NCBI RefSeq assembly: GCF_963853765.1
Contig: NC_088855.1
Span: 31,682,001-31,746,000 of the forward strand
Length of the DNA stretch: 64,000 nt
DNA from: Magallana gigas
Lineage: Eukaryota
Direction: 5' to 3'
How positions within the stretch are numbered: position 1 is the stretch's first letter; each line of letters starts with the position of its first letter. Position numbers and translations under genes: made by a program. Shown here piece by piece: positions 5,185 through 51,441 of the stretch. The notes under the pieces were generated by a model that worked only from the letters and a program-made list of their open reading frames with translations, was not told the origin of the DNA and did not search any database.

Positions 5185-6077
5185 AGGAAAAAAGCCGACT
5201 GTTGAGATTTTAATGGCCGTACGTGTGTGTTTCTAAATTACGTATCCGCACGACATCTACGGGACTGAACTTTCGCAATGAATTTTGTATTTTTGCCGTC
5301 GGTTGTCAAAAAATGAAATTTAATTAAGCTTCGCTTTATGCATGCGGTGATAACAGGAAGATTAGCAATACAGTGACATGTAGGGAGAACTGTTGTGTTG
5401 ACTTGTTTACAGTTTACCACGTGTGTGTATCAGTGTGTGTTCATACCGATAATATGGTTTGTAGATGATGGTTTTACCAGAAGTAATGCCATCGCAGCCT
5501 CTGGTTGCTGTCTGTCTATTTGATCTGAAAATCGTGGATTGAATCCTGCGGTTTCTAATCAAAAACTTCCTAAAGGTGAGTTCAAGTTATCTACCTGTAT
5601 GAGTGAAAAAAGAAGGCGTGCCTTAAATCAATACCGTATTCATCGATAATTATATATTCAAATGTCAAATTTTTTTCAATCGCTATTTAAGGTATATTCG
5701 GAACTTGAAGTAGACGTTGGAATATAACTATGACAATCTATAAGTTTGGGAGGAGATAATTCACAGACGATTTCATAAATGGATATTAAATCATTTCTAT
5801 GGTTATCGATTTTCGTAAGTATAAATCTTATTTATCAATGGTATTTATTACGTGTTAATCGATTGATATGAATTTGAAAATAATGCTCATATCTCTCTCT
5901 CTTTTATCATTTGTTCGGTTTTAAAGAACAATCGAATTTGAACTTTGAATATTCAAGTAAAAATTACTCCAATATTCTTACTTTCTGCATTTCTTTTGGC
6001 GTAGTTTTTTTTACGTCACAGCTTTAAATGACGTCATTATCAGGAGTTTTAAATAAAAACTTAAATTCGTGATAAAA

Positions 6078-8414
6078 ATGAATTTGAAAGTACTGAGAGA
6101 CATCCTAGGTACTATCCTATTTCTTATAACGCAGCTTTCGTGTTTGTCGGCGGGACACACTGGTTCGAATTTCTTAAGGAACAAAATGGAACGCCAAGGA
6201 CTGACCGACATAGAGTCGACAAACCTTTTGTTCAGCAACAATGATATCAGGTATACATGAAATAATCAAAGTTTCTCTATGTGTTTAACATGAAGGTATA
6301 ACTAATACATGTATTATAAAAACGAAATTAAAATTGTGTTTAACAACATTTATTATACTATAAGTAACTGTTTCTTAAGTTTATACATAAAATTAGAAAC
6401 AAAAATTATATAATATGTTGAGGGTTGAATTTCCTGAAAATATGTACTGTTTTGTGACAAAGTATAGTGCATTCGATTGATCTCCCATATTATGATAAAT
6501 AGGTTCAAACGAGGAATAGCGAAGGGTGAGTTGTTAACACTTGAGGTACAGTTTGGATACAGAGGGGAAAACTTCAGTATACAGCTGAGTACTCCACGAC
6601 AGATTTTACACCCATCGGCCGAAATACTTTCTCAAACGGATGAGACAAGTGTTCGATGGACAAAAGATCATCCAGATTGCTTTCTTACTGGAACCGTGAC
6701 GTCACATCCTGGTATTGCCTCCTTTTCAATCTGTGATCAAATCGTACGTAAACTTAATTAACTTTTATCAGAAAAGCTTTTGCTTCTCTTTCTTTGTCAA
6801 TTTTACCATATAACGAATTATATCAAAGCTGAAAGCCTACAGTTTTAATATCTGCTAGCAAGACACTTAATTACATTTTGAAAAATTAACAACGTATTAT
6901 TCGTGATAATTTAACCTATTGGTTTTTAATTACTTTTACGAACTTAATTTGAAAAAGATTTTTAAAAAAATGAGGATGCAAATAGAAACAGTAAAATTAT
7001 GTGGTCAATATGATCTATTTTATCGGAGAGTAAAAGCGAATTTAGAAAAAAGCGAAAATAGCGATTAATTTTTTTTTCTAATGGCACTTTCAATCAAACA
7101 TTCATTAACCGCCAAAGTAGAAGGCATTTCGTCAAAATACAGAAGAATCAAAACAATTTCAAGCCCAGTGAGCTGAATTTAAGATATTTCATCCCATGTT
7201 ATCAACCCTGGTTTTTAACTTTTTGTACTAAAAATATGATTTTGATCAGTCATCTGTGAATACAGTGCACACTAGTATTTTTCATCCTTTGATGAATTTT
7301 TAATGCCAGAAAAATTGGTTCTTACGCATTCTTCTGTATGCCAAGTAATTTTACACTTTTTAGGAGTATTAATGTGCAATGTAATTGATTCTGATAATTG
7401 AAAAAAGATTTATCTAAAAATTATCATACACTACAGTGCAAATAGGTCAGGTTAGATTTATCACACCCATATAACTTTTTTTCCCTATTTTTAGAGCTAT
7501 TTAGAGGATTTATCCGCAGGGACTAGACCTAAATAACACAATTTTGGCATCACAAAAGACATACCTAGAAGCAATAAACGCATAACGACTTTATAGAAAT
7601 TACTTTGGTTATTTCAGATTGGGATTATAAAGGCTGGTAACAATGATCTTCATGTACACTCTTTATCTGGAACTTCAAAACGAGGATCTATACAGGTGCT
7701 TGTTGGGCGACAAAAAGAAAGGGATTCTCCATCAAATCATTTACACGGTAATTATTTAAATATTTAGACATAAATGTACAAAAAATTGAGTCTAGAGGTA
7801 AACATTTGACAAAACAAAGACAAATAAAGATAATGAACATGATTTTAGTTCATTTCAATGACCAATTCTTCAGCCAATTTAGAGAAGCTACAAGAACACG
7901 AAAGAAGCAGACGGTCGGTGACGTCACACAACATCACCATAGAGATGGCGGTGTACACGGACGCTGCCTACACACAGGCCATATTGGTGAAAGACTTCTC
8001 CAAGAGACTGGAACACATTCTTCTCAAGTATTACGCCGTACGTTTGTCATTAAAACAATTGGTACAAAAAATCTAATAACAGAAAAGATTTATGTCTATC
8101 GGATAAATTGTTGAAAAGTTGAGCTCTAACGTGTCGGTATGTTTTATCGCATACCTTTGTAATGGAATGAAAAGATTGACAGTTAAGATACTGTGATGTA
8201 ATGTTCATTGATTTTCATTGAGTCAGACCTTGATATAAAACAATCCTTTTTGACTCTGAATAATTGATACTAATTGCGTAATGAAGTGGACCAAAACTCT
8301 GACAATGAAAAAATATATCAACAGGTTCAGATGGAATGGTCAAGGTTCGATATGCTCGGGTACCACGTGCAACTTGTTCTGAAGAAAGTTCACTTCTATG
8401 AAACGAACCCTGTA

Positions 8415-8475
<61 letters not shown>

Positions 8476-11400
8476 AAATGATCTCATTCATGTATATCTC
8501 TAATTATCTCTTTCATCTCTCGGTAAATCAGTTAATTATTTTTTTTAAAATTAATTAAACAAAACGCATCCATTTCCTAGTCTTGGTACAACTCCTCGGC
8601 AACGTTACTAGGGAGCGTGCTGTCCACTTTCTGTGTGGCTACTAAGGATGATGGAGCATTCGATATACGATATATGCATGTCGGGTAAGAGACTGTTCTG
8701 TTTTACCACATTATAACATGCTTTCCACAGTTAATATATACGTAAATGAATATGTACACGAATACAAAGATAAACCCGTGTGCGTCATCATTTTTTTTCC
8801 TTATTTCTATAGTTACAGTGTATGACTTGAAAAATGTTTAATATTCTTGTTTGTTAGATACCTCCATATGTTTATATATTACATAACATAATTATGACAA
8901 AAAGAGGAAATATTTGCTGGAAGACAAGACTGTTTAGTCAACAAGAGCACCAACACAGGGCTTAAAAACCAATTATGTTTACCACCCCAAAACGATGTTT
9001 ACAGCTGTTTGCTAATTTATACTGGCAAACTTAATTTCGTGAAATAAATCATGCATAGGTTGTTTCAAAAAACTACCGTCGATTTTATGTCACTTTTATT
9101 ATGTTAATATGGGAAGTAATCGCAATTGCATTGGAAACTAAAAATATTTACCATACATGCAGTAAACCTATTTTAAAGCCCTTTTTTTAGGCGATTTTTT
9201 TTAGACAATCATATTTTTCTATTACTCTGTCCTTCATTGCAGTGACTCCCCGACCTGGATGTGTAGTTATGATTATGTATCAATTTTCTATCAATCTTTC
9301 CTCTATTACAAAGTCTGACCAACCTGGACGTCCTGGGGCGGGCCTACCAGAACTCTGTGTGTAACCCGACCTACAACTGTGCCGTAGACACGGCGACAGG
9401 CGCCGCCAGTTTTGCCGCCACGGCGCATGAAATTGGACACCTGTAAATATTTTCTTTACAATTAATATTGTTTACATAAATACCGGTATGCAATGAATCA
9501 TAATTATCCTAATTATTAACATGTACCATGTTTCCACATCAGACTTGTCAATGTAGATTACAACATTATGTGTATATGAACTGATTTGAATTCTCCATCG
9601 ATATTGTGTTTATACTGTACTCTCCACTGATCACTTTACCAGAAACGACAAGGGTACGTACATACATGTAATCTCTTGAACAGTGGTGCAGGGTTTTCGA
9701 TTGGGATGTAGAGGTGGTTTTCTTGAACTTTCAGCGTAGAATGTTATAAACCCTCCATGCATGTGTTTATATATATACAATATATGTAATTAGACACCCT
9801 TCAAGGTTTCTTTACTTTTTAATCCAGAAATAAGGTTTACTGGTACATAAGTATGTGTGGGAAAATATAATCTCGTTTCTCCGAGAGAAGCGAGACCGAC
9901 CGTGGCTTTACGGCATTGTGAAATCACGCGTATTTATCAGAGTGATTTCGTATTAGACAGGTTGCATTGAAATGATCTAGTTACTATGCAGATATATTTT
10001 TGTAACCTAAAACGTCCATCGTAAATTGAAAAATAATTGATTGCAGAATGACAATTGACAGTCTATTCATTGTTTTACAACAACATTTATGTTTAAATTA
10101 TGCGTGAAATGTTACGCGACCATTGAAAGAATAGAATACGAGGATACGACCAGAGAGCATTTCTGAAACAGTTAGTTATGAAATAAAAAAAAAACCATGC
10201 ATATTTTATAGTATCCAAATCGTTATTAGAAATGGTTATATATTATTCATAAATTCACGAATTTTGTTGTAGTATGGGAATGATGCACGATGCCGACCGA
10301 GGCTGCACCGGAAGTAACATTGGTGTGATGGGCGGATACGGAACTGGTTGGAGTAGCTGTAGTAAAAGCGACATGGACGCTCTATTGCAGTGAGTTTTAC
10401 AACCAACCGCGCGGGATATACTGTAACGTTGTTTTTGCTCAGACTAGAATGACGCAATGTCATTCGATAAAACGCGTCATATGATTTTCGTCATTGTTTA
10501 CAACTAGATTTCAACAAATGGCGGCCGTGACATTTTGTTTTCAATGAATGTCAAACTTGTCTTCAATTTACATATAGTTTTGGTATTCGAAAGAACAAAT
10601 CACTTAATAGGTTAGCTACTGGCATATTTCTGACACATAAGACCGTCAGTAACAAACATGTACGTAACTTCATTCAACCATGTGCTTAGTTGATACAATA
10701 CTGTGTACAGGGTTATTTTCGCCCCGTGTAATATTCGCCCTTCTACCTTTTCGCCATTTTGCAAACAGTTTCGCCCCGTCTTGAATTCACCAAGACACAG
10801 CTGTGTGTAAAGAAAAATAATTGAAGACATCAGAATTCGCCAAGTCTTAAATTCGCCCGCTAACAACGAGGGCGAAAAGGACGAAAATAAAACGGGAGCG
10901 AATATTTCCATGTAGACAGTAGTATCCAATTAAATTACGCGTGCGGTTATTGTTTACGGTCGTTTTAAAATTACTAACAATCTGTAATTTTACAATAAAG
11001 GAAAGGAGGGAAAAATTGCCTTTGGGAAGAAAATATTCCTTCCGGAGATGTTCAACAGAACCTGGCTGATATCGCAATCAGTCCCAGTATACCGGGTATT
11101 CGGATATTAAGTTATTTCTCTCTGACAAATTCGTAAAATTAATAGACTTTGATTTATAAGTTCTGATATGAGTTTTGATTCAGACATCGATTTACCCCAC
11201 TTCTTTTCAGGTCAGCAGTACTCGCCTGATCAGATATGTGAACTCAAGTATGGTTCTGGATATCGATTTCGGAAGTATCCAAAATTGGATGTATGAATAT
11301 TTATACATTTGCTATTTTAGCTTAAATTTAAAAAAATCCTTACTTCGCTTAAAATTGGCATTTATATTTAACCAATCCGTTTACTACCTTTTTAATAAGA

Positions 11401-14400
11401 TCAAAATCTCCTCGGATGATTTTCTTCGAAAGGACGTAATCGATAATTTTCAAACAAGTTATCTTTTCTAGGAGGTTGTGTGAATATATGTAAATTTTGA
11501 AGAATTGTCATTTTTGTATCCCATCTTTATAAGGAAGCTAAACAAACTTCTGAATTAACAAATAAAGTGTGTATATTTCAGTAAGATACAAATTAATTTC
11601 AGATCTATTTACTAAACTAGTTGATACTCACAATGCACTTAATGTAATGAAATGGATATTTTGATTTAACATTAGGTACAATTTGACTAATAAAAGAAAT
11701 AATGATAAAATTTACTTATTTTAATTTTTATAGTCGGTTTCTGCAGATCAGAATGAAAGATTCTTACGTTATTTTTTTTAAATAAAAAAAATTCAAGTTA
11801 CTAGTACTTAATTTATATTGTAAAATAACAAATTTTTAAAAAATCGCATCTTATTATATATTTTAACTATCACTCAAATTTTGTAGACAATTCTTCAACT
11901 TGATTGAAACTGTTGGATTATCTTGTAGGTGTGTGTGCTATACTCATGTGCCAATCACAATCATGCTCAAAGTAATTACGGCCAAATGTTTAGAGAAGGC
12001 ACGTCCATTTTTGGCATGTACTGTGATAAAAGTAAAGTAAGTTTACATTTTATCAAATATCGAAAAATTACGTTTACATTACGATAATCATTGATCAGAG
12101 TTTGCATCTAAGTGAACGGTTTCAATTATTTAAGAAAGACAACGAATGAACATGTATGTTCACCAACATAAAAATTAATTTGTTTGAAGATCTGTTTTAA
12201 AATGGGCTGTGTGGATGCATCAACCGCCAAACTAACCAACCTGGTGGAGCGTGAAGGTGGGTGGAGTCAATGGGGGCCCTGGACTGGGTGTACCAGAACA
12301 TGTGGGCGGGGCATCAACTACCGGAAGCGGAAGTGTGACAATCCAGCGTAAGCACGTGGTCAATGAAATTCGGTCCACTTTGCTACCCTTTAAAAGGGGG
12401 AGGGGAGTGGAGTTGACCGTAAACCCTGTCTACCGAAAATGACATAAGCATCGAACAACGTATATATAAAATCTAGAAGCATATCTTTTTTTTATTACTA
12501 AAACTATTATAGATAACTTGACAAACGTTCTTCCTTATTCAGTCCCATCAATTTCGAGGGTTGTCAAGGTGATGGATACGAAGCTGAAGCGTGCAATAAG
12601 GAGGTATTTAATATAGTATCTTTTGACAGTGCTTTCATTGTTATCTATAAATCTATACATAGAACAGTGATTTGTTAAGATATCACAATTCAACATCATA
12701 AGTTTCATATCACTGACCAGGAGTAGCGATTTCTTTCTATCTAGATTTGAAAAAAAATCGATTCAACAAATATTTGATGATCAATCGATGTAACAGTTTC
12801 AGATTATTGGTGAAAAATGATTGGTAAAAAATCGATGTTACAGATTTGTAAAACCGAAGTTACATATTTGTTAGTAAAACGTCGTATTTCTTCTTCTTTT
12901 GTTCTCAGCCATGTCCCAGTGATAGCTCTGACCTTGCAACATTGAGAAATCAGCGGGCAAGTGAGACGTGTAAGAGACTAAGGGACAACAATGTGATCAA
13001 CCCTGACCTCTACAACGAAACGGGGTCAAGGTATTCCAATATAGGTACACACTACTAATGAAGATAGTTTAGCCTAATGGTGTCTGAAAAATTATTCAAA
13101 ATTATTTGAAATATAAATAAATGACAAATTTAAAGTATTCAAATATATTTTTTATATATATAAGATACACACAAACCTAAAATTAAGATTTGTTTTACAA
13201 ATAAGACCACGGTCAATGTGAGGTGACCTGTGACCCCGCCCCCGGGCACACCACCCCAGACTTTACAAGATTCGGGTTTATGCCGGACGGTGTGGCATGT
13301 ACTGGAGGATCTGACCCCTGGGATCTAGACAACTGGCCCCGGAATTCCGGATCTTACTACATGTGCTTAGACGGTCTATGTCAGGTATGTATGCACTAAT
13401 GGTTATTTACTTGCGTTTTACTGATTCTGGCATTATGTTCGATGTCAAAAGAATGAATTTAGTTGAAAATGAATGATATTTTACTTTATAAGAGGTTTGG
13501 ATGTGACGATAAATACAACGGAATGACGTATGACGAATGTGGGGTATGTGGGGGAGATAACTCTACCTGTACTGTGGTATCGCAAGTGTTCACTCAGACA
13601 CAAAGCAAAGGTGAAGTACACATTTTTTCCTTTATTATTAAACTGTCACGACTACTTTAGAAGTGCAATACTTTAAAACTCTGTTTTTTCAACAGGTGGC
13701 CGCCTTACTGTTGCTACACTCCCCACTGGAGCCTTCAATATCCAATTTTGGTTTCCTTTTAAAGAGATGGGCGGCAACTATTTAGGTAACGTGACTTTTG
13801 TTTTCTTTTGATGAGATTTATTTGTCTATCAACACAACGAAATTTAGTTTTGTTTATTTAAAGAAAAAGTATTTTGGTTCCATAGAAATTTACGACAAGC
13901 AAGGGAAGGTAATTTTGGCCAGCCTGTATTCCGGAAAGTTTGATACAAGAAATGACCCAATAGTGTTCGCTGGTACCGAGTGGCACTTTTACTTCCATAC
14001 ACAGTTTCTTCACGCTAAAGGACCACTGAAAGAAACATGTGAGATCAAGGTACCCACCATCAATGATAATGCATGAAGTCCTGTTATTAACTTTTGATAT
14101 AAATCATAGTAAAAAAAAATAGACAGGTACTAATATGGATGAATATCTACAGTTGTTTCAGTATGAGGCCAACGGCAATGTTGGTGTAAACTACATATAC
14201 TCGGAATCTAAACCAGGTAAATTTGACCCCTTTCCTTCTTTTTTTTTTTTAGAAATCGTGTAAATACTTTTCCTTGTGTCTTTTTCCCATTATCTTAATA
14301 ATAAAAACAACATGTCCTTAATTCATTTACATCCATGTTTGCAGTGATTTTCGACTGTGATTTTGAGGGCTCTACGGGATGTGGGCTCACTATGAATGGT

Positions 14401-28400: not shown

Positions 28401-31400
28401 ACATCTTATAAATATATATAACAGGAATTTGAATAGGTTATGTAGTTAAAATTTAAAAATCTAATTGTTTATTTGTGCATTTTTCAGCTGTTTCAATTTG
28501 GTGTTAACAACAACACTGGAGTCTCGTTTACTTATTCGGAGCCTTTGGCAGGTAATACAGAAGAAAACATATAGTAATTAAATATAGTGAGTTACAGTTT
28601 GTCTTTAGATAAGATATTACTAGTGTTTGCCAATTTCTAACTGTCCTTAAACTGAAAAATATTAAATTACCCCCCCCCCCCCCCCCCAAAAAAAAAATAA
28701 AATAAAATAAATTATTAAGTTCAAGTACTTTGAAGTGAACATATAATACTACTACTGAACTACTTGTTTTCTTTAGTTAATTACAAGTGTGGATTTGAGT
28801 CGGGCTTAGAGAACTGTGATTGGTCAATTAACAATTTCACCAGGATAAAGTATGGATCAAACGAATCCTCCGTTCCGAATCAAGATGAAGAGTTTGGAGG
28901 CATGTTGCTTTTTCACATTCATTGTTTTTTAAATATAGAACTTAGCCAAATTAATAAACTTGAGTCTTTCCTTGTTGAAAATATAATAAGCAATTTAAAA
29001 ACAGTCATATTATTATAATATATGACGTATTTCATCGATACACGTATACGTATCTCTCAATGCTCTGTATCACCTTTGTTAAGGTATTCAATGTATAACG
29101 AAGGGGTATTGAACAATTTTGAACCATTTTAAACTAGTTAAATATGTATTGCTAGATAACAATGAAAGTGAAATGAACCAAATTCACATGACTGACAACA
29201 TATAAAAAGCCGGTCATTTTGCACCTTAATTTTTTAATGAGTTATCTCCCCTTGATGAAAAAAAGAAAATTTTAATTTCGCCAAAGTATCTGCGGTAAAT
29301 GATTCATTTTATTTCATATTTTAATAAAGAGAAAGTTTATACATGTATTAACCAAGAGAGTTTTACCAATTTTATGTTACTTTTTACAATATCTTAATAA
29401 AACATACGTTGCCCATAGACTTCAATGCAAAATTCAAGGTGTAATTAGTTGGACCATAATTAATATTTTGAAAATTCCTTTGGTGGAGTAATTTTATTTG
29501 ATAACATCTTCAAAATGATATCATGATTAAGAATATCGGACCATTCATTTATTAGGTACAAAATGTGGTCGTTATACATCGAATACCTTAAAGTAACGCT
29601 TATTTTTTGCTTCATTATCTTACAGAATACTTCATCCATATGTCTAGTTTAACCACTGACAACACAGCCACCATAACTAAGCAGAATATTCACGGAACCA
29701 GTTATGACCAGTATCTATCCTTAAGTTATCACGTCACCGGAATAGGTTCTAAAATTACAGTGTCGTTGCATGGTGGTATAAACACCAGTGTTTTGTGGAG
29801 TTCTGTAGATTCGTCACAGCTCGTGATCAATGAGTGGAAGTCTGCAACAATGAATATCACCACTTTTGAAAAATACGAGGTACTTGGAAGCAAATTTGTA
29901 ATCATTTTTAACAAATCAACACGAATGTATAAAAATTGTAATATCTATAAGCCAACAATTGGCATGTTCTTTAACATATTGGTTGAACCAGTCCTTTAAA
30001 TATTAATTATAATACAATTTAAATAAAATGATTGTGACATCTAGAAATTTTTAAAAAAATAAATCATATTTTATTTTTCCTGTAGATACGCATAACATGT
30101 GAAACAAAAGTTCGATATTCGGGAACAATTTCTTTGGACGACCTTAAACTTTCTTATTACGAAGATTCATATTGTAACGATGAAGGTAAGAAAAAACTCA
30201 ACGCCATATATCAGTTTATAAAAAAATAACACCCACTGTTAATGCTTCCTGTTCTCTCTATTACTAGATTCATGTGTCACGCCTTCCTTGGACCTTTCAA
30301 CATCAACTACATTCGTGTCAACTACAAAGTCAACTTTCACAACCCCTTCAACCACAGTGAAAGAGGATACAACAAACCCTGTAGCTTCCACCACTACAAA
30401 TTTGCATGAAACAACAACTAAAATTAAAGATATAACTGAAACTACCACCTCTGGATCTGAAACAACACCTGTAAGCCCTACAATAACCACAGAATCAACT
30501 TCATCAATAACAACTTTAACATCAACTAAAGCCACATCTACGCCAGAGATCAGAACGACTCTATCGACTGGAATCACAACAACAACTGAGACAGGAACTG
30601 CGTCATCAGAGACAACAGCTAAGACTTCTGGAAATACTACAACAGTTTCGCCAGTCAGTACAACAGAAACTGTGGGCACGTCGACAACAACAACCATGAC
30701 GACAACAACTCCCGTTGACACCGAAACTTCAACACAAAAGACAACAACAAAACTTACAACATCGAAAGAAGGTACATCGACCAGCACAACTGTCTCAGCT
30801 TCAACAGTTACGTCATCAGAAGAAATAACGACCGCTAAATCTACACTAGAATCTACTTTAAGTCCCACTACGTTTAATTCTACGTCATCATCACTAAAAT
30901 CAACCACGCCAGTATCTTTGAGTAGTACTACCACGATCAACGATGCAGGTACTAGTCCATCTATCATACCCAATCATACATTTTTAGCTGTTGTTGGACC
31001 ACAAATGCCATTGGTGTTACATCAGCTATTTCTCATATATTATCATTATGCTTCAATGAAACTAATCTGAACTGATTGAGTGAGGAAACATTTTTATAAG
31101 TCATTTTAGATTTGTTTGCTTTATATAAATGATTCTTCTGTTTCAAGGAAAGAAATCTACATATGACCATTGATTTAAAATGTCAAAAATATTTATCTAA
31201 AAGTTTTCAAAGTAGCTATTTCATATTCATTAGATTCATATGGGAGATATATGTTCATGGGTCTTGCGATTGCTGGTCCGTTTATTCTGATGCTGATAGC
31301 TGTCGGGATATTTATTTGTTGTCGCCGATGTTCAAAGTAAGTTTCGTAATTCAACGTCCAACTTTTTAACTAAATGAAATTCAACTTCATTTTAAAGGAA

Positions 31401-31698
31401 AATATTCAAACAAAATTTATCGATGTTTTTGTTCGATTGTTTCTCGCAAATAACTGATGCTTTAAATGTTAAATTTAATTATCTATACAAAGTTTGTTTT
31501 TAAATCTTTACTAGGTGTTCACCAAAAGGGAAAAGTCAAGAGAAATACCGAGTTTCCAAGCAATTCGATGGCAATTCCAGTCATATCGATGGATCTTCCA
31601 AGCCGTTAAGTCCGCAGTTTTGGCCGGATGTAAATGAAATCAAGATCAACATTACAAATGATTGTGATATTGATTTGGGATCAAAATCAGAAATTTAG
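19349..31698 (+). CDS. ADAMTS-like M12B metalloprotease with MAM domain, long mucin stalk and TM anchor (paralog B, about 1284 aa, 26 coding exons)
   Basis: Exons 19349-19408 (signal peptide [20 protein letters not shown], least certain), 19976-20091, 20529-20778, 20888-21014, 21103-21263, 21807-21893, 22140-22243, 22736-22864, 25501-25617, 25749-25843, 25972-26051, 26370-26477, 26600-26757, 26896-26956, 27065-27200, 27347-27525, 27639-27756, 27929-28018, 28210-28379, 28488-28551, 28777-28899, 29626-29879, 30086-30185, 30268-30948, 31234-31336 and 31515-31698 sum to 3855 nt. Motifs: RIRR|SVT; HEIGHLLGMYHD; GLMGG; TSP1; MAM; 227-codon Thr/Ser stalk; [25 protein letters not shown] followed by CCRRC. 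Confidence 0.87.
22883..25399 (+). mobile_element. Composite Helentron/HINE-type non-autonomous insertion(s)
   Basis: Two 5' ends ttttagctcacctgag (near 22883 and 24278), a (GTCC/GTCT)n tract at about 22935-22982, a satellite-like core and the 3' end caggtgagcgatgtggcccatgggcctcttgtt. This matches the described layout of oyster HINE elements. It lies in the intron that splits the zinc-binding motif of paralog B. Confidence 0.75.
24296..25055 (+). repeat. Tandem array of about 4.5 units of ~167 bp (Cg170-like satellite)
   Basis: The unit ...gggtggggccacaatggggg...aatctttaaaaatcttcttctcagaaactaatcagcc...agcatcctcaggtagtgtagattcaaagttgtgaaaatcat... recurs near 24297, 24469, 24636, 24802 and 24968. 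Confidence 0.85.
29083..29587. mobile_element. Non-autonomous DNA transposon with TTAA duplication (Kolobok-like), 505 bp
   Basis: TTAA|ggtattcaatgtataacga ... tcgttatacatcgaatacc|TTAA; 19-bp TIR with one mismatch. Confidence 0.8.
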
Positions 31699-33150
31699 TT
31701 CACTTTAAAGAATCATGATATTGCAACGAACAAACTTTATTGCTATGGTTCGTAGTAACATGTTTGCTGTGTATTGTTTTTTTTTTGTACTTTTATATAT
31801 GTTACATTAAAAATTATTCTAAAAGGTATTTTTTCCAATTTTTTTTTTCGATTTTAAAACTGTTTAATATTCTAGAAGTATTTATAGACGCGATATATAG
31901 TTTAGACCATTTTAACTTTGATGGCATTGAAACTTACGCTTATTATACAATTTATACAATCCCCAATTTAAATGGCATGGAACTTCGATATTCAAAAACA
32001 TCTCTGCTAATGTTGCAATCAGTTACTTTTTTTCTTCAGACATCTTGAAAAAGATGTGTAAATTAGTGTTCGGTCGAGGACAGATCATGAGGTTTTATTT
32101 TTTCCATGTCCCAACGTAACAGGAGCTAGTGTGGATATATTTCGCACAATTACCACAACCGTATTAGGAATACTTTGTCAGTTGCTCTCTTGGTAAACTC
32201 ACGACTTGAAATTTATACATTTTCCTGTTTAGTTTAAACATGTAAATGCCGTCATTCTGTGTCATAGAAATTATATTTATTACATCCACGAATGTTAACA
32301 TGTACTTGTATACAAATAGAAAGGAGGGAAGGAAATGTAAGGATTACTTGCTTTTCTTAACTAAACTCTTTTTAATTAAATACACTCTCAGTTGAATAAA
32401 CGATTGACAACCAAATTGATGTAATTCGACCACTGAATACTCATAGAAGGCTTGCGTTAAATATGAATAGAAATAATTATTCAACAACACGTAATTTAAT
32501 TTTTGAAACCACCATGTCTTTAAATATAAATGAACGAGTGCTTACACATCCATTCAACTAGGTTTTTCTGGTTACAATCCACATACACCCTAAATTAAAA
32601 AAAAATTCAAGCCGTAAAAAAGCGGCCTTTCAGCAATGAACGACGTAATCAAGTCTACTTCCAAGTATATTTTTAAAGAGAGCTTCGTTTTAAAGAATCC
32701 CTTTATTATTTGCATGCCATTCTGCTGTATAAGCGTCGACATGAATGAAAAATGAATGTCTCGATTCATTGTTTATACCTTTAAGGATCAAAACACTGTG
32801 TGATTTCTGTATTTTTTTTACACCCGAATATATCAGAATTTTCCTCTGGTTTTTCTTTAATTAAGTATTACTAGTAATTCAAGCGATCTATATTCAATAC
32901 TTCAGTTTGACAGTAAGTTAATATATATAAACTTCACTAACTTCTTGAAATCACACAAGTTTTCATAAAGGGACCTGAAGACTTTCTATAATATCAGCGT
33001 CAAATTTTCGAACAATTAAATATGGATAAACCGCATTGAATTCATACCGTGTTCAAGGTACATGTATAATAAAAGACATTCAACATTTTCTTTTAAATAA
33101 CTGGTCCTATGCCAATGTATTTCTCTTCCTGGTTGGACTGACAAACAACA

Positions 33151-36100
33151 ATGAAGAAGTTGAATCGCCGGCCATGTCTCTTGATTTCTGTCCACTTCCT
33201 CACCTTAGGCTTTATGATAGAAGGTATGATTTATTATATTACAAAAAACCCTAAAAGATCGTATTAAATTTTTTAATAGACTCAAATAAGACAATTTTCA
33301 TGTAGGAAAATGGGATCCATTTGTAATGAATGAAAGAAAGTTCACGTTTAACAGGGTACGTCACTGCATTCTTATACTAAACAGTTATTTGAGATATTCT
33401 TTGTAAATATCGTGCTTGGGGGTTGGAAGAAGTAAGGAAAGCCATAACTGTTTTAAGGTATTGTACACTAGTCAATATCAAAATACAAGGGGTGTTCCTT
33501 GGAACAGTGGGCCGTTTAAATAGCAGTTAACAGATTGCAGCTGTTTTAACATTTTGCATCCACAAAATTTTTAAAACTTAAGTAAAAATTACTAGAACGA
33601 ATTAAATTCGGTTGCAGGAAATGTGTTCACTAGTTGTGACTTTGAGGATGGATTTTGTGGCTGGACCAACCAAAACTGGAGTAGAACCGACGATAAGTCA
33701 CCTTTGGAAAAAACGGGCCCTGAGAGCGCCTATCATGGACGTGCGTTTGTCTTTGATTTGTTTATTTTTTTTTCTTCAGTCATTATATATTCGTGAAAAT
33801 ATTGTTAACATTTCGAAAAACGTACAGTTAAAAATACATATAGCTTTTTAGAAAAAATCAACTAGCATTTACTCAATCATCTGTCATCATTGAAAAAACA
33901 TTTTAAAGCCCAGGGGAAAATACACATTATAAAAAAATGAGTTCAAATGAATTATTTATTCCAAACAGTTTATTATATATACTCACACGGTGGGAAGATA
34001 GGCCACAACGTCACTGCGACTCTTGAGAGCATTGGCATTCCACCTTCCAAATATTGTTTGCTCTTTAACTATCATATGCTGGGATCGCATGTAGAGAAAC
34101 TAGAAGTGAAATTAAACGACCAAACAACGGCGATCTGGTATCGAAATGTTACAGAGCAGGGGAAGGAGTGGAAGTGTGCCGCCATTAATGTAACCATTGG
34201 TCAGCCAGACAGTCGCGTAAGTCCAGTCTATTCATTTTTCAGTGACATTTTGACCCATCAACTATATTGATCGGAAAGCATTGGTATCTTTTAAAAATTC
34301 TTTATTGCATGCATTTTTACACGATTTACAAAACCTCTTTAATATTTTTCATAGTGGTGATACATTTAAGTTTGGCTAATTTTAAATATTTAGATAAAAT
34401 CTCCATGGTTTTCATTTGTATTTCAAGAAAAGTATTTTTTTTTATTTCATAGATAATTGAAAAGCATGACACTTTTTAATGATTTTTTTTAATTACATAG
34501 ATACGATTTATAAGCAGGACAGGGAAAACAAAAAATTCATTATATGACATAATTGGATTGGACAATATCAAACTGGTGTCTGGCGTTTGTAATTCACTAG
34601 GTAATGCGTTGGTTATTTTTTCATAAAGTAAAATGAATGTGATTTATATTTCCTTTTAATTTTTTAAACATATAGTTAGGCCACATCAATATTATTTCTT
34701 GTTCGTCGGACCCCGCGTGCTCGTATATTTAAATAAAACTATACAAATGATATTATTATTAATTTCCCGCATCCAGAAAATTCTGCACCGTTTTCTGCTC
34801 TATTATGGCTCTATTTTTTGCATTTTAGATAGTTTTAATTTATAGATCAATAAAAAGAAGAAAAAATATAATCGTTTGCACTAATTATTATATGTACCGC
34901 CTAAAAATTTTGGCTCACCCGCTCATACCTTTTTTCACTGGATGTCCGACGAAAAAGAAATTATTTTAATTTTGGTGTGGCCTTACGTTTATTACTTCTA
35001 TAAACATCAAATGCTATTATATAAATAGTGCCTGTTTGGGAGGGTAACTGTTGAAATTGACAGCCCGAGACAACCATTGTCAACCGACGCGAAGCGGAGG
35101 TTGACAATGGTTTTCGAGGGGTCTCAATTTCAACAGTTACCCTCCCAAACAGGCACTATTTATCTTATTATACTGAATGTTTCCTTTTTAAAGAAAATTT
35201 TACTGCTTTTATATAGAAATGAAGTGAATTCTACGGCGAACCGTACGCGCATAATGTACGCGCATGTTACAATTCGTTGTGTTACCCGTTGCCAAGTGTG
35301 TTGCTAACGCTGAGGGTAATAGAACGGATTACCAACTGCGTCTAAACCAATCAGATTTCAGTATTTAACATGAAAGTATAATAATCCTATTTAACATTCT
35401 ATAAACATCAAATACTATTCTTATTTAACAATTCATTAATTAACGCAAGGTTCACTTTTGAAATTAATTGTTATTATGTTATAAATCCATACTTCAGATC
35501 TAGAAATGCTCGAAAAAGGAAAAGTTTCATATGTTAGTATAAATCAAGTTCTATTAAACTAAGTTCGTTACAAGTTTTAAATTCCCCGTGGTATGGTGTC
35601 TTTTAGAGAACAAAGAAGCAGATAAGTTGTTATCCCTTTACAAGGTACGCGACCCTTCCTCCGACCCTGTCCCTCTCAACATTCACGCCCCCATAACAGT
35701 TAAGACATAATTTTCTGTCGACAGATTGTGACTCGTCATTCAACGTAACGTCAACAACGACACGACAGCAACCAATATCATCAACGACAACGGATTCAGT
35801 GATCCAAGTACAGGAGTCGACGGAGACTGAATCATCGTGGTTTATAAGTAAGAATACCAAAAAACACCCTGTCTATTGGAATTCTGGGAAATGCTCAGTT
35901 TTAGATGTACGTTTAGAAAAACCAATATGGATTTGAAAAACATGTTACAAAATTAAAGAGATTTTGATAACCTGTTTCAGGGAACTTGCCCTATTTGGTT
36001 GGAGTGCCCGTGGCAGTTTTTCTCGTTTCGTTCGTCGTTATCGGCGCCTGTATTTTCCACTCTCACAAGGAAAGGTAATTCACTTTCGGTTTCTTAGCCA

Positions 36101-36583
36101 AAAAATCTTATACATGTATTAAATAAGTACTACTAACAGTAGCTGGGATTAGAACACTTTGAAACAAGAAGTAAAACATTTCTACCCACCAAACTAAGGG
36201 ATTCCTGGATAATATTTTAACTTTAGCGCTCAAACAAGAATTTAATAAATTCTTTCACTACTAGTTCCAGACGGTTGCCTGCTGGAATCATGCGTGGTCC
36301 ATACAGAGCCGATGGACTAAATGACAGATACCGAGATGATCCCACCAATCATCGGGATACAGGACATGAACTGTACTATTCTGAGCCGGACACGGACACT
36401 TACGATTATGTAGACGTCGTTCGAGACCCAGACAGTCTCTATCTGGACGTTATACCCGACTCATCGGGTGCAGACTGTGTTCAAAATGGCAGTCATCCGG
36501 CAGATGTATCTCCAAAACCAGGAGACTATTATAACGATGAGAGTCCGTATTGTGAACCAGTTAAAGCGACACAAGATAAATAA
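33151..36583 (+). CDS. Single-pass type I membrane protein: MAM domain, Ser/Thr stalk, TM, Tyr-rich cytoplasmic tail (gene C, about 357 aa)
   Basis: Exons 33151-33223 (signal MKKLNRRPCLLISVHFLTLGFMIEG), 33618-33740 (SCDFEDGFCGWTN...TGP), 33969-34216 (YCLLFNYHMLGSHVEKLEV...W), 34501-34600 (IGLDNIKLVSGVC), 35725-35847 (stalk), 35981-36074 (TM LVGVPVAVFLVSFVVIGACIF) and 36271-36583 (tail) sum to 1074 nt. Confidence 0.87.
34679..34982. mobile_element. MITE, PIF/Harbinger-like (TTA duplication)
   Basis: TTA|ggccacatcaatattatttcttgttcgtcgga ... tccgacgaaaaagaaattattttaattttggtgtggcc|TTA. Confidence 0.7.
34996..35419. mobile_element. Palindromic non-autonomous element flanked by 23-bp direct repeats
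   Basis: Hairpin 35023-35161 with a perfect 38-bp outer arm and a perfect 14-bp inner arm. Flanks ttctataaacatcaaat(g/a)ctatt at 34996-35018 and 35397-35419. Confidence 0.65.
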
Positions 36584-37111: not shown

Positions 37112-40100
37112 TTACATGTTCATGTGACAATCATTACATTGTATACTGTATAAAGAATAGAATTCGTTAAAGTCTGTTGCTGTGTTGTTTGCACAATTTT
37201 TGTAATACTGTAAAGCATAGCTAATGCACTCTCTGTTCCCTTGTTGCGACTGGAGTTCGTCCATCAACTTCCGGCGAAGAGATTGTTCTACCGGAAGTGG
37301 TGGGGGAGGAAACAAGGTGTTGTTGCCTGTAATATATAACAAGTTTATCTCTTAAAAAAGATTGGTGAGCTAGCGCTGTAGCGATCATAAAACACAGAAG
37401 CAGATTTCTAAAACATTGGTTTAAATTTCTGAATCGATTAATATTATTAACAATAGGAGGCACAGTGGTGTACTGGAATTGTGCTGGAGTGGGGTCTCAA
37501 TTTGAAATTGTGAATCTAGAGTGGGCTACACATCGGCAATGACATAGCTCATTGTCTGTGCCTTAATCATAATGTATCTCCTGTAATTTCAATTTCGAGT
37601 TGAATTTTGTTTAGGAAGTCCCAACGATTGGTATTGTTTTGTAGCAATCGTATCTACTTGGGCCTTTCCGGCAAGCTCGGAAAACATATCCGAAGTTGTC
37701 TTCCGAACTTGAAGGAATTTAAGATAAAGCTAGCTACATGTTATTTATTATAATATTGAAAATAACTTTGCATTATAAGACCGAAGCTACTGTTACTTTT
37801 TGACATTAACGATAAAACACAAAACTTCATGTGAAGATGATAAAACGAAATTAAAATGGTACAGTTTATCTACAGTAGTACAGTATTCCCAGAATCCCCT
37901 ACTATGGAGTCGAGCATGCGTTTTCCAGTGAAAAGGACTAACGTAGTTGCTAGCGCTCGAGAGCGCTAGCAATAACACTGTCAGTATTTGGAAGAGCTCT
38001 ATTTGGATAAAAAATATTACTTGTGAAATAGAAGCATAAACGATTCAAATTTATAGCGATAAATATGACGGTTAATCATTTACATTGTACCATACATGTA
38101 CAATACGACTCAATATGCTTTGCTTACAGTTTTTGATATCTTCAGACACGATGACTTCTTCGTCTTCTTTCGAAGACCCTGAATTGAAAAATTAATACAC
38201 GTATGATTGAGACAATTAAGATAAAGTGTGTAATTAGAAACGCTCATCTTCATTATTATAAGATAGAAGACAAACCAGTTGGAGATACCCCGCACGAACA
38301 CAGTTTCATTTGTCGCTCAAGTTCCTACAATGAACCAATAACATTGATTAGTATTGCACAACTAATTCCTATTTTTTTTCTTTTGTACAAAACAAAGCGA
38401 GACAGAACATGTCGATAAATTATAATTTTAATTAATTACATGTATATCATTGAACTTACTGTTAAGCGTTTTGAGAGATTTTCAAAAGCTTCAGCTAAAA
38501 AGAGAAAATCAATTTTTAGCTATAAATATTAGCTGAATGTAATCATAAATAGTAATGTCGGCATGTCGTCATTCATTGTGAATTTTAGGATAATTATTTG
38601 ATTATAAATTGCTTTTTATAGGCGTACAAGTCATGTACAAATGAGACGACTGTACTGAAGATTAATCGTAGTAGAAGATTGCAAACAAATAGTTTCTCAT
38701 ACATAATGCAACAATTTTTAAAATACAGTGCAAGTAAAGCGCAATAAACATAAATAATAAATTACTACAGAACATATACAATGTTTTTAACTATATGTAC
38801 AATCTAGACGTAAAATAAGATAAAATGTCGTATCCCAAATCTAACCTGTTAGTTCCGGTGGAATACTTCCGGACTCTCCCTTTGGTCCCGGAAGTCCAAT
38901 TGTTCCCGGACGACCAGGGTTTCCTATTTCTCCTTTCCCGCCGGGAATTCCAGGTTTCCCGGGCGGCCCCGGTAATCCAGGAGCTCCTTCATTTCCCTTT
39001 TCACCCCGAGGTCCAGCATTTCCTTTAAGACCCCTCTCACCCGGTAACCCCGGATCTCCCGGCCTCCCGTTTGGACCTGGGGTTCCGTAATCACCCTTCT
39101 GACCCGGTAGTCCAGGCAACCCCGGTTCTCCTCTCTCACCCTTTGGCCCTACCGGACCGGGCAAACCTTTGGAACCAGTTTTACCAATTGTACTTGTGCT
39201 TTCCTTCATGGATTTATAGAAAAAAAGCATTTAAAATGTTTCATTCTTTAATTGAATCCCTTTCCCCTTATAAATAGATGGCATTGTAAAGGTAAATTGA
39301 TGTGATTTACTTGAAAAAAAAAAACCAAAATAATATGTTGCGTGTTTATTACAGGAATAATTCTTTAAATGTCAAATGCTTACGTCTACTCTTCTTTGAA
39401 GCTTGTAAAACTCCACCGCTGAAAAAAGATAACATTTTTTATCACATCTCTTCTCAATAATGTAAATCAAAATATTAAAAAAAAATACTCTGCATCACTG
39501 CCACATATGATGTTTGTATTACATACAATGGTATGGAAAGAATTTATATAACAGCCTTTCGGTGTTATATGTAGAACTTTCTTCATATCATATACAATTA
39601 GAGGGATGGTGGTGGAAAAAATAATAAACTGTAGAAACTTTTTGTGTAAATCTGTAAAATGTTCAATGTGATAGTTCATCTCATTACCTCCTACACAAAG
39701 CATTTCTAGTAAAAAAAACCCTCAAAACACTCCTAACAAATGCTTTCGATAATAAGCCTACCTGATATAGAGGTGGAAACCCCTGGTTCGCCCTTCTGTC
39801 CTCGTTGACCAGGGTTCCCTTTTTGTCCGTTGAGGCCAAATAACCCAGGCTCTCCCCTAGGCCCCGGAGGACCCATAGGACCTCTTTCTCCGGGGATTCC
39901 GTTGACTCCAGGAGATCCCTTAATTCCAGGACTCCCATCAACGAGTGCTGTAACAAATGCATAATCGTTTTGGTTTTTTTTAATTGCAACCTGACTGCTC
40001 AATGCTTATATAAATTGATTGATAATAATTTACTATTTACATATATTCTCGTTAAAATATCGTGAATGAAAAGAAAGGAATCTATAATGCCCAATGATGA

Positions 40101-41996: not shown

Positions 41997-42196
41997 NNNN
42001 NNNNNNNNNNNNNNNNNNNNNNNNNNNNNNNNNNNNNNNNNNNNNNNNNNNNNNNNNNNNNNNNNNNNNNNNNNNNNNNNNNNNNNNNNNNNNNNNNNNN
42101 NNNNNNNNNNNNNNNNNNNNNNNNNNNNNNNNNNNNNNNNNNNNNNNNNNNNNNNNNNNNNNNNNNNNNNNNNNNNNNNNNNNNNNNNNNNNNNNN
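41997..42196. other. Assembly gap (200 N)
   Basis: N run next to an (AG)n tract, between collagen-like genes D and E; the true distance is unknown. Confidence 1.
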
Positions 42197-48725: not shown

Positions 48726-50394
48726 TCATGAGGACGCTACATCATGAAAGTTCTCTTCTTCCTCAGCCTCGTCCTGACCTATGGTGTCGTCATCGGATAC
48801 GTCAGACTCAGCCTTCTCTTTGATTGGCGGTTTTCCGTCTCCAAGGTCATGCTCTAAAGGTTTTCCATCTCCAAGGTCATGCTCTAATGGAGCCTCTTCC
48901 TCCTCTTCTTCGGCATCGTCAACAGGGCGTTGGGCCTGCTCTTCGGATTTTTCCATCGGGGTTTTTTCTGTTAGTTCTTCCTCGCGGTTCTCTGCTTCCA
49001 TTTCTAGCGAGAGTCTGCTTCGTTCCAGTTCGTCCATTTGGCTAAGACCACGAGTTAAAAGCTTAGGACTACCAGACTTCTGGTACTCTGTTGAGTTGGA
49101 GGCTGAGGGAAACTCGGGAGGCAGATCATAAGCCACAGAATGGAGACTTATCGATAATCCCTTCTCCTTTGTTGTTGCTTCGCTTTCCTCCTTCGACATT
49201 CTGTATTCTCTGTAAGGGTTCAGTTCTTTGGCACTGTGTCGTATATTAGTTATATATACGACATCGTTAAAGCCAGAAAAGTCAATCTCCCATCTGCCAT
49301 TGCCAGCGTCAAATTCCTCAATACGATCGAATCGATGACCCCAAAGGATTTCCGAAGGTAGATAGGAAGTTCTAGCTTGACAAAACTCCCCAGTTGTTTC
49401 CAAGGTTCCCTCAATACAAACCACAAGTTCATAAGCTTCAGAGGACAAATCGGATGGCCTTATATCCCAAAAGGGGCTCTCTTGTGTAATTCTATGACTT
49501 AAAATAAGGGGCCACATAAGCATTATGGTATCCCCCATTTTGTTGGCCTGGAAATGGACATCGTGTTGAAACAAAGGGTAGGCTACTCCTTCCCGGGTAA
49601 CGTGTCTTTTGATGAGGATTCCGTGTACTTTGGCATCAATAAGATGGCTTTGTCGCATATCTCCTACGCGAATCTGTAAGCACGAGAATTACAAAAATAA
49701 ATAAAAATGCATTTATACAACAATTTCTCAGTATTCAAAAACCAAATTGATTTCGTAAACAAAGTATAAATCTTATAATTACCTGCAGACAAAGATCGCC
49801 TTCCTCTTGCGCAACACATGCCACTTTACTGAACATTATGGTCTTCCTTCGACGCTTTGGCTGAGCAAATTTGACAAAAATGAAGCCCAGGAGGACATTT
49901 TCCAACAGAATACCGACTGTGATCTGTACAAAGAGAAGTGGAAGGGCGCCACCACAGTCTGTATTTGGATAGGCGAAACCGTATCCGATGGTCGTTTGGG
50001 ATTCAATGGAAAACAGCATGGCGTCACCGAAACTGTGGACGCCTGCGACGCATGATTCCCACTTGGGATCGTTTAGGTGGTCGAGATCCCCATGATTATA
50101 CATCATCCAATACCACATGAGGGCGAAAAAGAAGTACGACAAAAGATGGACATTGAAGAGCACTGCCAAAGCATACCGCCATTTTAGGTCAATGAGAGTT
50201 ATGTAGAGGTCTTGGAAAAATTTGGCGCGGTACTCTTTTAGTCCCGTGTATTTCACTCTGTAGTGCCCGGATTTCTGTACAATTGCTCTCCGTTGTTCTT
50301 CTGGGTTATACTGACCAAGGTTAAATCTTTGTTTGACATAATTAACAAAGGGCAGTTTGCTAAGTTTTTCTTCCACTTTTTCTTCCGTAAACAT
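48726..50394 (-). CDS. Inward-rectifier potassium channel (Kir/KCNJ family), paralog 1, about 519 aa
   Basis: Exons 50394-49783 and 49673-48726 with a 109-nt GT-AG phase-0 intron. Motifs: LIDLKWR, M1, FSIESQTTIGYG filter, M2 QITVGILLENVLLG, IRVGDMRQSHL, YELVVCIEGTLETTG, RTSYLPSEILWGHRF, long acidic tail. Confidence 0.95.
48829..48890 (-). repeat. 30-bp coding tandem duplication (PLEHDLGDGK x2)
   Basis: ggttttccgtctccaaggtcatgctctaaa followed by ggttttccatctccaaggtcatgctctaat. Confidence 0.9.
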
Positions 50395-51441
50395 GGCGAT
50401 CGTTCGAAAGCTCGCGACCAATTGTTCGGTATGTGAGTTTCAGGTTTGCCTTTTTGGGGGATTTTTACGGTGGTCTAAAATTTTGACATCCCAAAATTAA
50501 TGGTAGATTTTTCCTGTTGATTAGTTAAATTACCAATAAATCTCAGTCAAGAAAAAAAAAATATATAAACAATTGTAGTAGGTAACCTAAGGGGCATAAC
50601 GCATCATTGCCTATAACGGTAGTGAGGCGGAAAATTCGTCAGGCGAAGCGTTTGCAAGTACATAAGTATCAATGTCTTGTTTCAACTGATGACAAGATAA
50701 AAGAAACCGATTAATGGGTAATCAATCAATAATCCTGAAATATCGATCTCTTAATTAATGGGTTTGTCCGCAACAAGAAATTGATCAACACAGTTTTTTT
50801 CAATTTACGCGTCAATTACAATGAAGGTGCTGAATCAATACTTTTCAACAAAGGCTGACCAATAACTAGTCAAAATTAAAACCTTGTTCCATATTTGCTT
50901 ACATCAATAAAACAATTATGGAATTTGTCATACGATTGAAACAATTTTTTTAAACTAAAAAATAATTAAAGAATAAAACATTGTGAAGCTTTTTTTCCCA
51001 CGTTGTATTTTACTAGTGCCCTTCTAGTGCCCTTAGCCCCCCCCCCCCCCCCCCCCAAAAAAAAATGTAAAGAATGTTTACATTTATATTCAGCATTATT
51101 TAAGAACCCATAATTTAATGTCCTGGAAAGGATTCCGTACGTGTATACATGTAAAACACAAGACATTATAAACATGTTATCAATGCATTGTAGAAGAAAT
51201 CAGAAATCGGACTACTTACACCAACACATGGATCATACATGTAAATCAAATAGCAATCAGATTTACTTGGGTAATTTGTAAATGATTTAGTTGAAAAGTT
51301 TGTAACAAGATCACTTGGAAATGTGTTTCAATTTTGGGGGGAAACGTGCATAAAACATGAAACTATTCACACACAAAAAGACCATGTAGAATTAATTCAT
51401 ATCAATACGTAAAGTCTCCAGCTCCGTTGAAAAAAAAAATT

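Follow-up and report, generated by a model that had tools for sequence, protein, structure and literature searches.

Two ADAMTS-like metalloproteases with a putative membrane anchor and a small MAM receptor encoded head to tail in Magallana gigas

The stretch of Magallana gigas chromosome C3 considered here (31,682,001-31,746,000; 64,000 nucleotides, called the window) carries three genes, A, B and C, arranged head to tail on the forward strand (Table 1). A and B encode ADAMTS-like metalloproteases that continue beyond the protease core into a MAM domain, a Thr/Ser-rich stalk, a putative transmembrane (TM) helix and a short tail, and C encodes a small protein built around a single MAM domain. 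MAM phylogeny, profile ranking, unique shared characters and conserved gene order indicate that the three genes are related by local duplication. All of them are automatically annotated, and both the ADAMTS-MAM-TM architecture and the C family are undescribed in the literature searched, in which no account of ADAMTS together with MAM in oysters, or of a transmembrane ADAMTS in molluscs, was found either.

Table 1. Positions of genes A, B and C and of their main exons in the window (nt, nucleotides; aa, amino acids)
Feature	Position	Strand	Remarks
Gene A	5779-17680	+	Putative membrane-anchored ADAMTS-like metalloprotease; NCBI 'ADAMTS 5 isoform X2' (P0012); 25-26 exons
Gene A, catalytic exon	9315-9443	+	Ends HEIGHL; joined to the next exon reads HEIGHLMGMMHD
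Gene A, MAM exon 1	14345-14464	+	120 nt; GC donor
Gene A, MAM exon 2	15608-15849	+	242 nt
Gene A, MAM exon 3	16013-16112	+	100 nt
Gene A, stalk exon	16336-16434	+	99 nt; first residues EAC
Gene A, TM exon	16965-17052	+
Gene A, tail exon	17515-17680	+
Gene B	~19976-31698	+	Second putative membrane-anchored ADAMTS-like metalloprotease; older UniProt model P0157; 5' end approximate
Gene B, catalytic exon	22737-22865	+	HEIGHL..GMYHD
Gene B, MAM exon 1	28777-28899	+	123 nt; GC donor; RNA joints of the three MAM exons in X1, X4, X20
Gene B, MAM exon 2	29626-29879	+	254 nt
Gene B, MAM exon 3	30086-30185	+	100 nt
Gene B, stalk exon	30268-30948	+	681 nt; Thr/Ser-rich, mucin-like; first residues DSC
Gene B, TM exon	31234-31336	+
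Gene B, tail exon	31515-31698	+
Gene C	33151-36583	+	NCBI 'uncharacterized protein' XP_065935408 (P0198, 359 aa)
Gene C, exon 1	33151-33223	+	Start codon and signal peptide MKKLNRRPCLLISVHFLTLGFMIE; phase 1 at end
Gene C, MAM exon 1	33618-33740	+	123 nt
Gene C, MAM exon 2	33969-34216	+	248 nt
Gene C, MAM exon 3	34501-34600	+	100 nt
Gene C, stalk exon	35725-35847	+	First residues DCD
Gene C, TM exon	35981-36074	+
Gene C, tail exon	to 36583 (stop)	+

The NCBI protein of gene A, P0012, matches 25 exons of the gene exactly when mapped onto the window, and the model has the junctions given here; the tail exon is taken from our own model, which agrees with the orthologue of Crassostrea virginica. 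Pfam recognizes Reprolysin, ADAMTS_CR_2, TSP_1 (45 bits), ADAMTS_CR_3 and ADAMTS_spacer1 in A, and the same domains in B except the spacer, which falls below threshold; a MAM is recognized in A as well. The Reprolysin matches have E-values of 4.9e-10 (A) and 3.8e-9 (B), the zinc motif HExxHxxGxxHD is intact in both proteins (HEIGHLMGMMHD in A, HEIGHLLGMYHD in B) and each has a furin-type RxRR site. After the stalk, A, B and their orthologues carry helices of 19-23 residues that are predicted to span the membrane on hydrophobicity only. Both proteins look catalytically competent and membrane-tethered. ADAMTS proteases are by definition secreted, and a protein with a TM anchor falls outside that definition, so that A and B are best called membrane-anchored ADAMTS-like proteins rather than canonical ADAMTS. 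They may act as matrix or surface proteases held at the membrane.

The TM exon of A contains an internal GT near 17021, and the NCBI isoforms of the A orthologue (P0012 from Magallana, P0154/P0155 from Saccostrea and Ostrea) all stop within the TM helix, for instance with ...GCFFLV in Magallana. The pattern points to a conserved alternative 5' splice site, whose use would yield a soluble or glycosylphosphatidylinositol (GPI)-like protein in place of the TM-anchored one.

With respect to B, all five junctions of its C-terminal module (28899/29626, 29879/30086, 30185/30268, 30948/31234 and 31336/31515) are seen in RNA contigs of three runs and in some raw reads, and the 3' untranslated region reaches ~31.9-32.4 kb. 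From the catalytic domain to the spacer, A and B are 75.5% identical, but in the MAM domain the identity is 33%; the MAM module evolves several-fold faster than the protease core. In both genes the intron after the first MAM exon is of the GC-AG type (14464/14465 in A and 28899/28900 in B), the donor being supported by the NCBI model in A and by RNA in B, whereas GT is found there in C and in an ADAMTS gene of Pinctada imbricata (P0165) that is described below.

Other features of A and B are local. Within the intron between the first two MAM exons of B, RNA-contig depth over 29079-29592 is ~250-2100 in the three runs, 5-20x that of the flanking exons, and loose contig ends cluster at 29079 and at 29591/29592; a transcribed repeat or transposable element may lie here. 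The HEIGHL exon, together with ~65 nt of upstream intron, is 93% identical between A and B (9250-9456 versus 22668-22878) and looks like a gene-conversion tract; the remaining exons are 71-81% identical, with one exception at 92% (7903-8043 versus 21129-21269). Gene B also has an extra partial copy of the 5' flank of the catalytic exon just upstream, at 22590-22680.

The C protein has a signal peptide and a single MAM domain, after which a short stalk leads to a TM helix and an acidic tail of ~115 aa. It has the features of a type I membrane protein: the product of exon 1 has a basic n-region and then a hydrophobic core, and a TM helix, predicted from hydrophobicity only, follows the stalk in six orthologues. 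Pfam scores its MAM at 69.1 bits over profile positions 1-158, the full length. In the three RNA runs the joints 33223/33618, 33740/33969 and 34216/34501 are present and position 34600 continues into the stalk exon (35725). No chimeric or read-through joint from B to C occurs among the RNA contigs of these runs, and exon 1 of C has coverage of its own. The tail exon begins at acceptor 36265 in transcripts (P0152) and in P0198; an alternative acceptor lies 6 nt downstream, at 36271, and the use of 36265 inserts Ser-Ser without affecting the phase.

The tail of C bears two YL[DE][VI] motifs and a C-terminal Y-x-N-x-E-x-x-Y-x-E-P, kept in five species. These motifs resemble immunoreceptor tyrosine-based activation motifs (ITAM) or YxxPhi endocytic signals. 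However, they depart from the strict ITAM definition (YxxL/I, 6-8 residues, YxxL/I), since Val is frequent at the +3 position and the two motifs are 6-9 residues apart in four species and 15 in Saccostrea echinata. When the tail exon was searched against the M. gigas genome, the sole match was itself, no paralogue being found, and similarity between the signal peptides of A/B and that of C is not evident. C represents a new family of small MAM receptors that appears confined to oysters, and it may function in signaling or endocytosis.

A first-pass annotation of this DNA, made from the letters alone, had proposed that C mirrors the C-terminal module of the proteases exon for exon. Its description was accurate. 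On the rebuilt exons the MAM exon sizes of Table 1, the Cys-containing stubs (EAC, DSC and DCD) and the shared phases 1-1, 1-0, 0-1, 1-1, 1-2 and 2-stop are all right, the junctions checked being backed by RNA contigs or NCBI models, and the signal-peptide exon of C is indeed joined directly to the MAM by the 33223/33618 joint in three runs. As evidence of kinship, these phases are weak. A Pfam MAM search of the whole M. gigas genome gives many exon-sized matches that break at profile positions 41-43 and 131-136. For comparison, splice junctions were solved with a local MAM profile at 12 other MAM loci (19 MAM units) on chromosomes C1, C2, C3, C5, C6 and C7. The phase-1 intron near profile position 46 of A, B and C is present in all 19 units, and the phase-0 intron near position 136 in 9-10 of the 19, with middle exons of 245-263 nt; according to the best-scoring splice pairs, junctions between successive units are mostly phase 1. 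The series 1-1, 1-0, 0-1 is the usual make-up of a MAM cassette in M. gigas, and the MAM-internal phases are uninformative for the kinship of A, B and C. The informative match is limited to the 1-2 TM exon and the 2-stop tail exon, which would agree by chance in roughly 1 case in 3. Intron phases shared within a mobile extracellular domain are thus a poor guide to kinship, and caution is required in their use.

Evidence for kinship comes from the MAM sequences themselves, which were compared with 856 full domains (~860 in the profile ranking) taken from the 150 top-scoring proteins in a search over 1.84 billion representatives. When the MAM of A or B is used as a phmmer query against the 856 domains, the C orthologues come straight after the A/B orthologues. 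With an A+B profile, the C domains of Ostrea edulis, C. virginica and M. gigas score 84, 78 and 56 bits, and the next domain 54. Reverse searches from C miss A/B as top match because the MAM module diverges so fast. A maximum-likelihood tree of 87 MAM domains, built with a site-heterogeneous model, has C (three species) as sister to A+B with support 85/94. A 36-row tree, in which six C orthologues are included, has the topology (Pinctada,(C,(A,B))), with supports of 75/79 and 84/77.

Several rare characters point in the same direction. The Cys that C, A and Pinctada carry at MAM column 122 is absent from all of 846 other MAMs. The A/B/C group has in common a 5-residue deletion, found in 13 of these 846, which is the reason why the first MAM exon is short (~123 nt). 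Asn83 (in 'FNYH') occurs in 12 of the 846, T141, N153 and K155 each in less than 8%, and the deletion plus T141, N153 and K155 together in none. Outside the MAM, the stalk exon begins with a Cys stub in A, B, C and Pinctada. By sequence comparison, the MAM of C is shown to be the closest known relative of that of A and B. The kinship of C with the protease module and the three-gene cassette proposed by the first-pass annotation are therefore upheld by the MAM tree, the profile ranking, these characters and synteny, but the "exon for exon" identity of phases is largely generic, a result that the annotation itself had named as counting against this argument.

The MAM of A and B is a divergent one. 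Against the Pfam MAM (PF00629) cut-off of 26.4 bits, A scores 29.4, the B of C. virginica 40.4 and Pinctada 49.8, and the older Magallana B model, in which MAM exon 1 is missing, 24.5. Exon-level Pfam scans gave no match for the MAM exons of B or for any short exon, which reflects exon length and divergence, not absence of the domain.

The cluster is conserved in other oysters. For instance, in S. echinata an A orthologue, a B orthologue and a 359-aa MAM gene follow each other on one strand, and the B orthologues of C. virginica and O. edulis are directly upstream of the C orthologues. In these three species, as in M. gigas, the next gene downstream is collagen-like and lies on the opposite strand. 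The C family is present in Magallana, Crassostrea, Ostrea and two Saccostrea species, and the orthologues share the seven exons of M. gigas C, with sizes of 70-73, 123, 245, 109, 117-123 and 94-97 nt followed by the tail. In both the protease tree and the MAM tree, the split between A and B is older than the divergence of the four oyster genera.

In the window, collagen triple-helix genes adjoin C downstream, from 38844-39230 (-) on to ~47.8 kb (Pfam Collagen, 70.8 bits). Farther on there are two inward-rectifier K+ channel (Kir) genes, at 56852-58096 (+) and 48726-50421 (-); one is an intronless open reading frame (ORF) of 414 aa, and the other is in two ORFs (IRK TM domain and IRK_C domain). 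A run of 200 N at 41997-42196 is an assembly gap or masked sequence.

The P. imbricata ADAMTS P0165 has a MAM-stalk-TM-tail region with layout and phases as in A/B: MAM exons of 111, 230 and 91 nt are followed by a stalk exon with ACD at its start, a 1-2 TM exon, a 24-nt 2-2 exon and a tail exon. Cys122 and the 5-residue deletion are both present in its MAM, and constraining it with A, B and C changes the likelihood by +11 units. Within 10 kb on either side of this gene no C-like gene was found, only the gene's own MAM being matched. The B orthologues of Saccostrea (S. echinata L019:10001-30709; S. cucullata P0160) pass from the spacer directly into a mucin stalk, and MAM exons were not detected in the S. 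echinata B locus; the phase 1-1 MAM cassette has been cleanly lost there. In Mytilus, the relatives of A/B have no MAM: P0170, P0172 and P0176 have EGF-like repeats and a TM helix, P0171 and P0175 a mucin stalk and a TM helix, and the tails are Cys-rich in P0170 and P0172 and Lys-rich in P0171 and P0175. Oyster and scallop ADAMTS-like paralogues have EGF-like C-terminal repeats and no TM helix. Membrane anchoring of ADAMTS-like proteases seems widespread among pteriomorph bivalves: relatives of ADAMTS in oysters, pearl oysters and mussels would be membrane-tethered, in oysters by means of the MAM-stalk-TM module.

How C and the proteases came to share this MAM can be explained in several ways. 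The explanation that we favor, with a probability of about 45%, is that C is a partial 3' tandem duplicate, formed in the oyster lineage, of an ancestral ADAMTS-MAM-TM gene. The duplicate would have retained the MAM cassette, the first part of the stalk exon and perhaps the frame of the TM exon, would have gained a promoter and a phase-1 signal-peptide exon of its own, and would have evolved a new tail with tyrosine motifs. C was found only in Ostreidae, while the Pinctada ADAMTS already has the MAM-TM region; on distribution alone, C is no older than the fused form, which favors C as the partial duplicate. Of the two origins that the first-pass annotation had offered, fusion or a protease-less derivative, taxonomic distribution thus leans to the latter, but approximately unbiased (AU) tests on the placement of Pinctada or on polarity are uninformative, with p-values of 0.45-0.64. 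Several results limit the confidence in this direction. The three arrangements of Pinctada, whose branch is very long, lie within ~1 log-likelihood unit; the protease tree is a polytomy, so that it does not establish the orthology of the Pinctada ADAMTS to A/B, and no similarity was found between the flanks of the Pinctada gene and those of the oyster locus. Relic protease exons between the B stop codon and C, or in the introns of C, were not found below E=2.7. No clear sequence similarity was found between the stalk, TM and tail of C and those of A/B, and possibly the MAM cassette alone is common to them; since Saccostrea B lost this cassette cleanly, it moves as a unit. In exon-level searches of its own genome, C matches best generic MAM genes on C5 (38-41% identity) and not A/B, and A and B match only each other (34%). 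C genes were not found beyond Ostreidae, even with a profile query, although a protein search by word matches can miss divergent relatives.

The reverse course of events is rather unlikely. A stand-alone MAM receptor resembling C would be the older form, and a duplicate of it would have been captured at a phase-1 junction by an upstream ADAMTS that was secreted or otherwise anchored, the signal-peptide exon being skipped; A and B would have duplicated later. ADAMTS without MAM are the general metazoan state, which implies that a MAM-TM donor once existed, and the canonical MAM of C (69 bits in Pfam, against 24-29 for A/B) fits a conserved donor and a fast-evolving recipient. Exon 1 of C and the last spacer exon of A/B both end in phase 1, giving a frame-compatible join, and a tree with A, B and Pinctada together and C outside is not rejected (p-AU 0.48). 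However, Pinctada is fused and no gene of the C type has been found outside Ostreidae, so that an extra loss or a missed gene is required; moreover, B-to-C read-through joints are absent from the RNA contigs and the tails of C and A/B are unrelated. As a third possibility, nothing more than the three-exon phase 1-1 MAM cassette and its Cys stub would have moved between neighbors, in either direction, the stalk, TM and tail being of separate origin and alike because all belong to type I membrane proteins. The Mytilus relatives, with mucin stalk, TM and tail but no MAM, and the two Saccostrea B genes, in which the cassette is removable and the anchor independent, are in accordance with it, as are the dissimilar stalk, TM and tail of C and the lack of a paralogue of its tail in the genome. 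Against such shuffling, which we consider improbable, it is the stalk exon and not the three MAM exons that encodes the extra Cys in A, B, C and Pinctada, the TM exon is 1-2 and the tail exon 2-stop in all of them, and LP[FY][LM] precedes the TM helix in the Pinctada ADAMTS and in all C orthologues, which is a weak resemblance.

It is also conceivable that C is an ordinary MAM gene that lies beside A/B by chance, with a generic exon structure, and that its grouping in the tree results from long-branch attraction. The generic intron positions and phases, the other MAM genes that are the best exon-level matches of C, the long stems of both C and A+B, and the failure to reject a tree in which C is constrained with two generic MAMs (p-AU 0.45) would fit this idea. 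Nevertheless, neither Cys122 nor the deletion combined with T141, N153 and K155 occurs in any of the 846 other MAMs, A/B profile and single-sequence searches put the C orthologues first, adjacency is kept in four genera, and the tree model is a site-heterogeneous one, meant to limit long-branch attraction. The absence of any special relationship is already disfavored and seems very improbable indeed. Partial duplication remains our preferred history of C. The locus offers a clean case of domain-cassette evolution between neighbors, in which the MAM is fused to a protease in A/B, stands alone behind a signal peptide in C and has been deleted in Saccostrea B.

The MAM domains of meprin, RPTP mu and neuropilin mediate oligomerisation, and by analogy an association of C with A or B through their MAMs is plausible. 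A complex prediction for the MAMs of A (P0012:793-948) and C (P0198:24-183) had a score of 0.00, which is evidence neither for nor against binding. Transcripts of B and C are present in the same three libraries, which does not amount to co-expression. A more elaborate proposal, to which we give little credence, is that A, B and C constitute an oyster-specific protease-receptor unit of MAM hetero-oligomers, in which C would be a non-catalytic subunit, a decoy or a substrate and would link the proteases to tyrosine signaling or endocytosis. Such a unit, if real, would amount to a new type of membrane ADAMTS complex, genomically linked since before four oyster genera diverged. If C works with A/B, they would provide a tractable protease-pseudoreceptor pair for the study of matrix remodelling or immunity in a commercially important animal.

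Comparison with known proteins helps to place the products of this locus. Orthologues of C have received the automatic name 'MAM and LDL-receptor class A domain-containing protein', but C has no LDLa domain. Like neuropilin, C has a MAM beside the membrane, with a TM helix and a tail after it; unlike neuropilin and RPTP mu, it has one MAM only and lacks CUB, Ig and phosphatase domains, and the extra Cys and 5-residue deletion of its MAM are common only to the ADAMTS MAMs. Among bivalve ADAMTS-like paralogues (EGF-like in oyster and scallop, EGF/mucin-TM in Mytilus), identity to A is ~42-44% over the protease-to-spacer core. The Mytilus proteins are, like A/B, anchored by a mucin stalk and a TM helix, but the bivalve paralogues have no MAM and have other tails, and their relationships to A/B form a polytomy in the protease tree.

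A and B share with ADAMTS, such as vertebrate ADAMTS1/4/5, a pro-domain with furin site, an M12B reprolysin domain with HExxHxxGxxHD, a disintegrin-like domain, one central TSP1, a Cys-rich domain and a spacer. However, canonical ADAMTS are secreted without a TM, whereas A/B add MAM, mucin-like stalk, TM and cytoplasmic tail and are devoid of C-terminal TSP1 repeats. The ADAM family also combines an M12B catalytic domain with a type I TM helix and a short tail, but its ancillary domains are disintegrin, Cys-rich and EGF instead of TSP1 and ADAMTS spacer, and MAM is absent. Meprins alpha and beta are, like A/B, metzincins with a MAM in the ectodomain and a single C-terminal TM anchor; nevertheless, they are astacins (M12A) with the order MAM-TRAF-EGF and no TSP1 or spacer, and homology is limited to the metzincin fold and the MAM. 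By analogy, A and B would resemble meprins and ADAMs in function.

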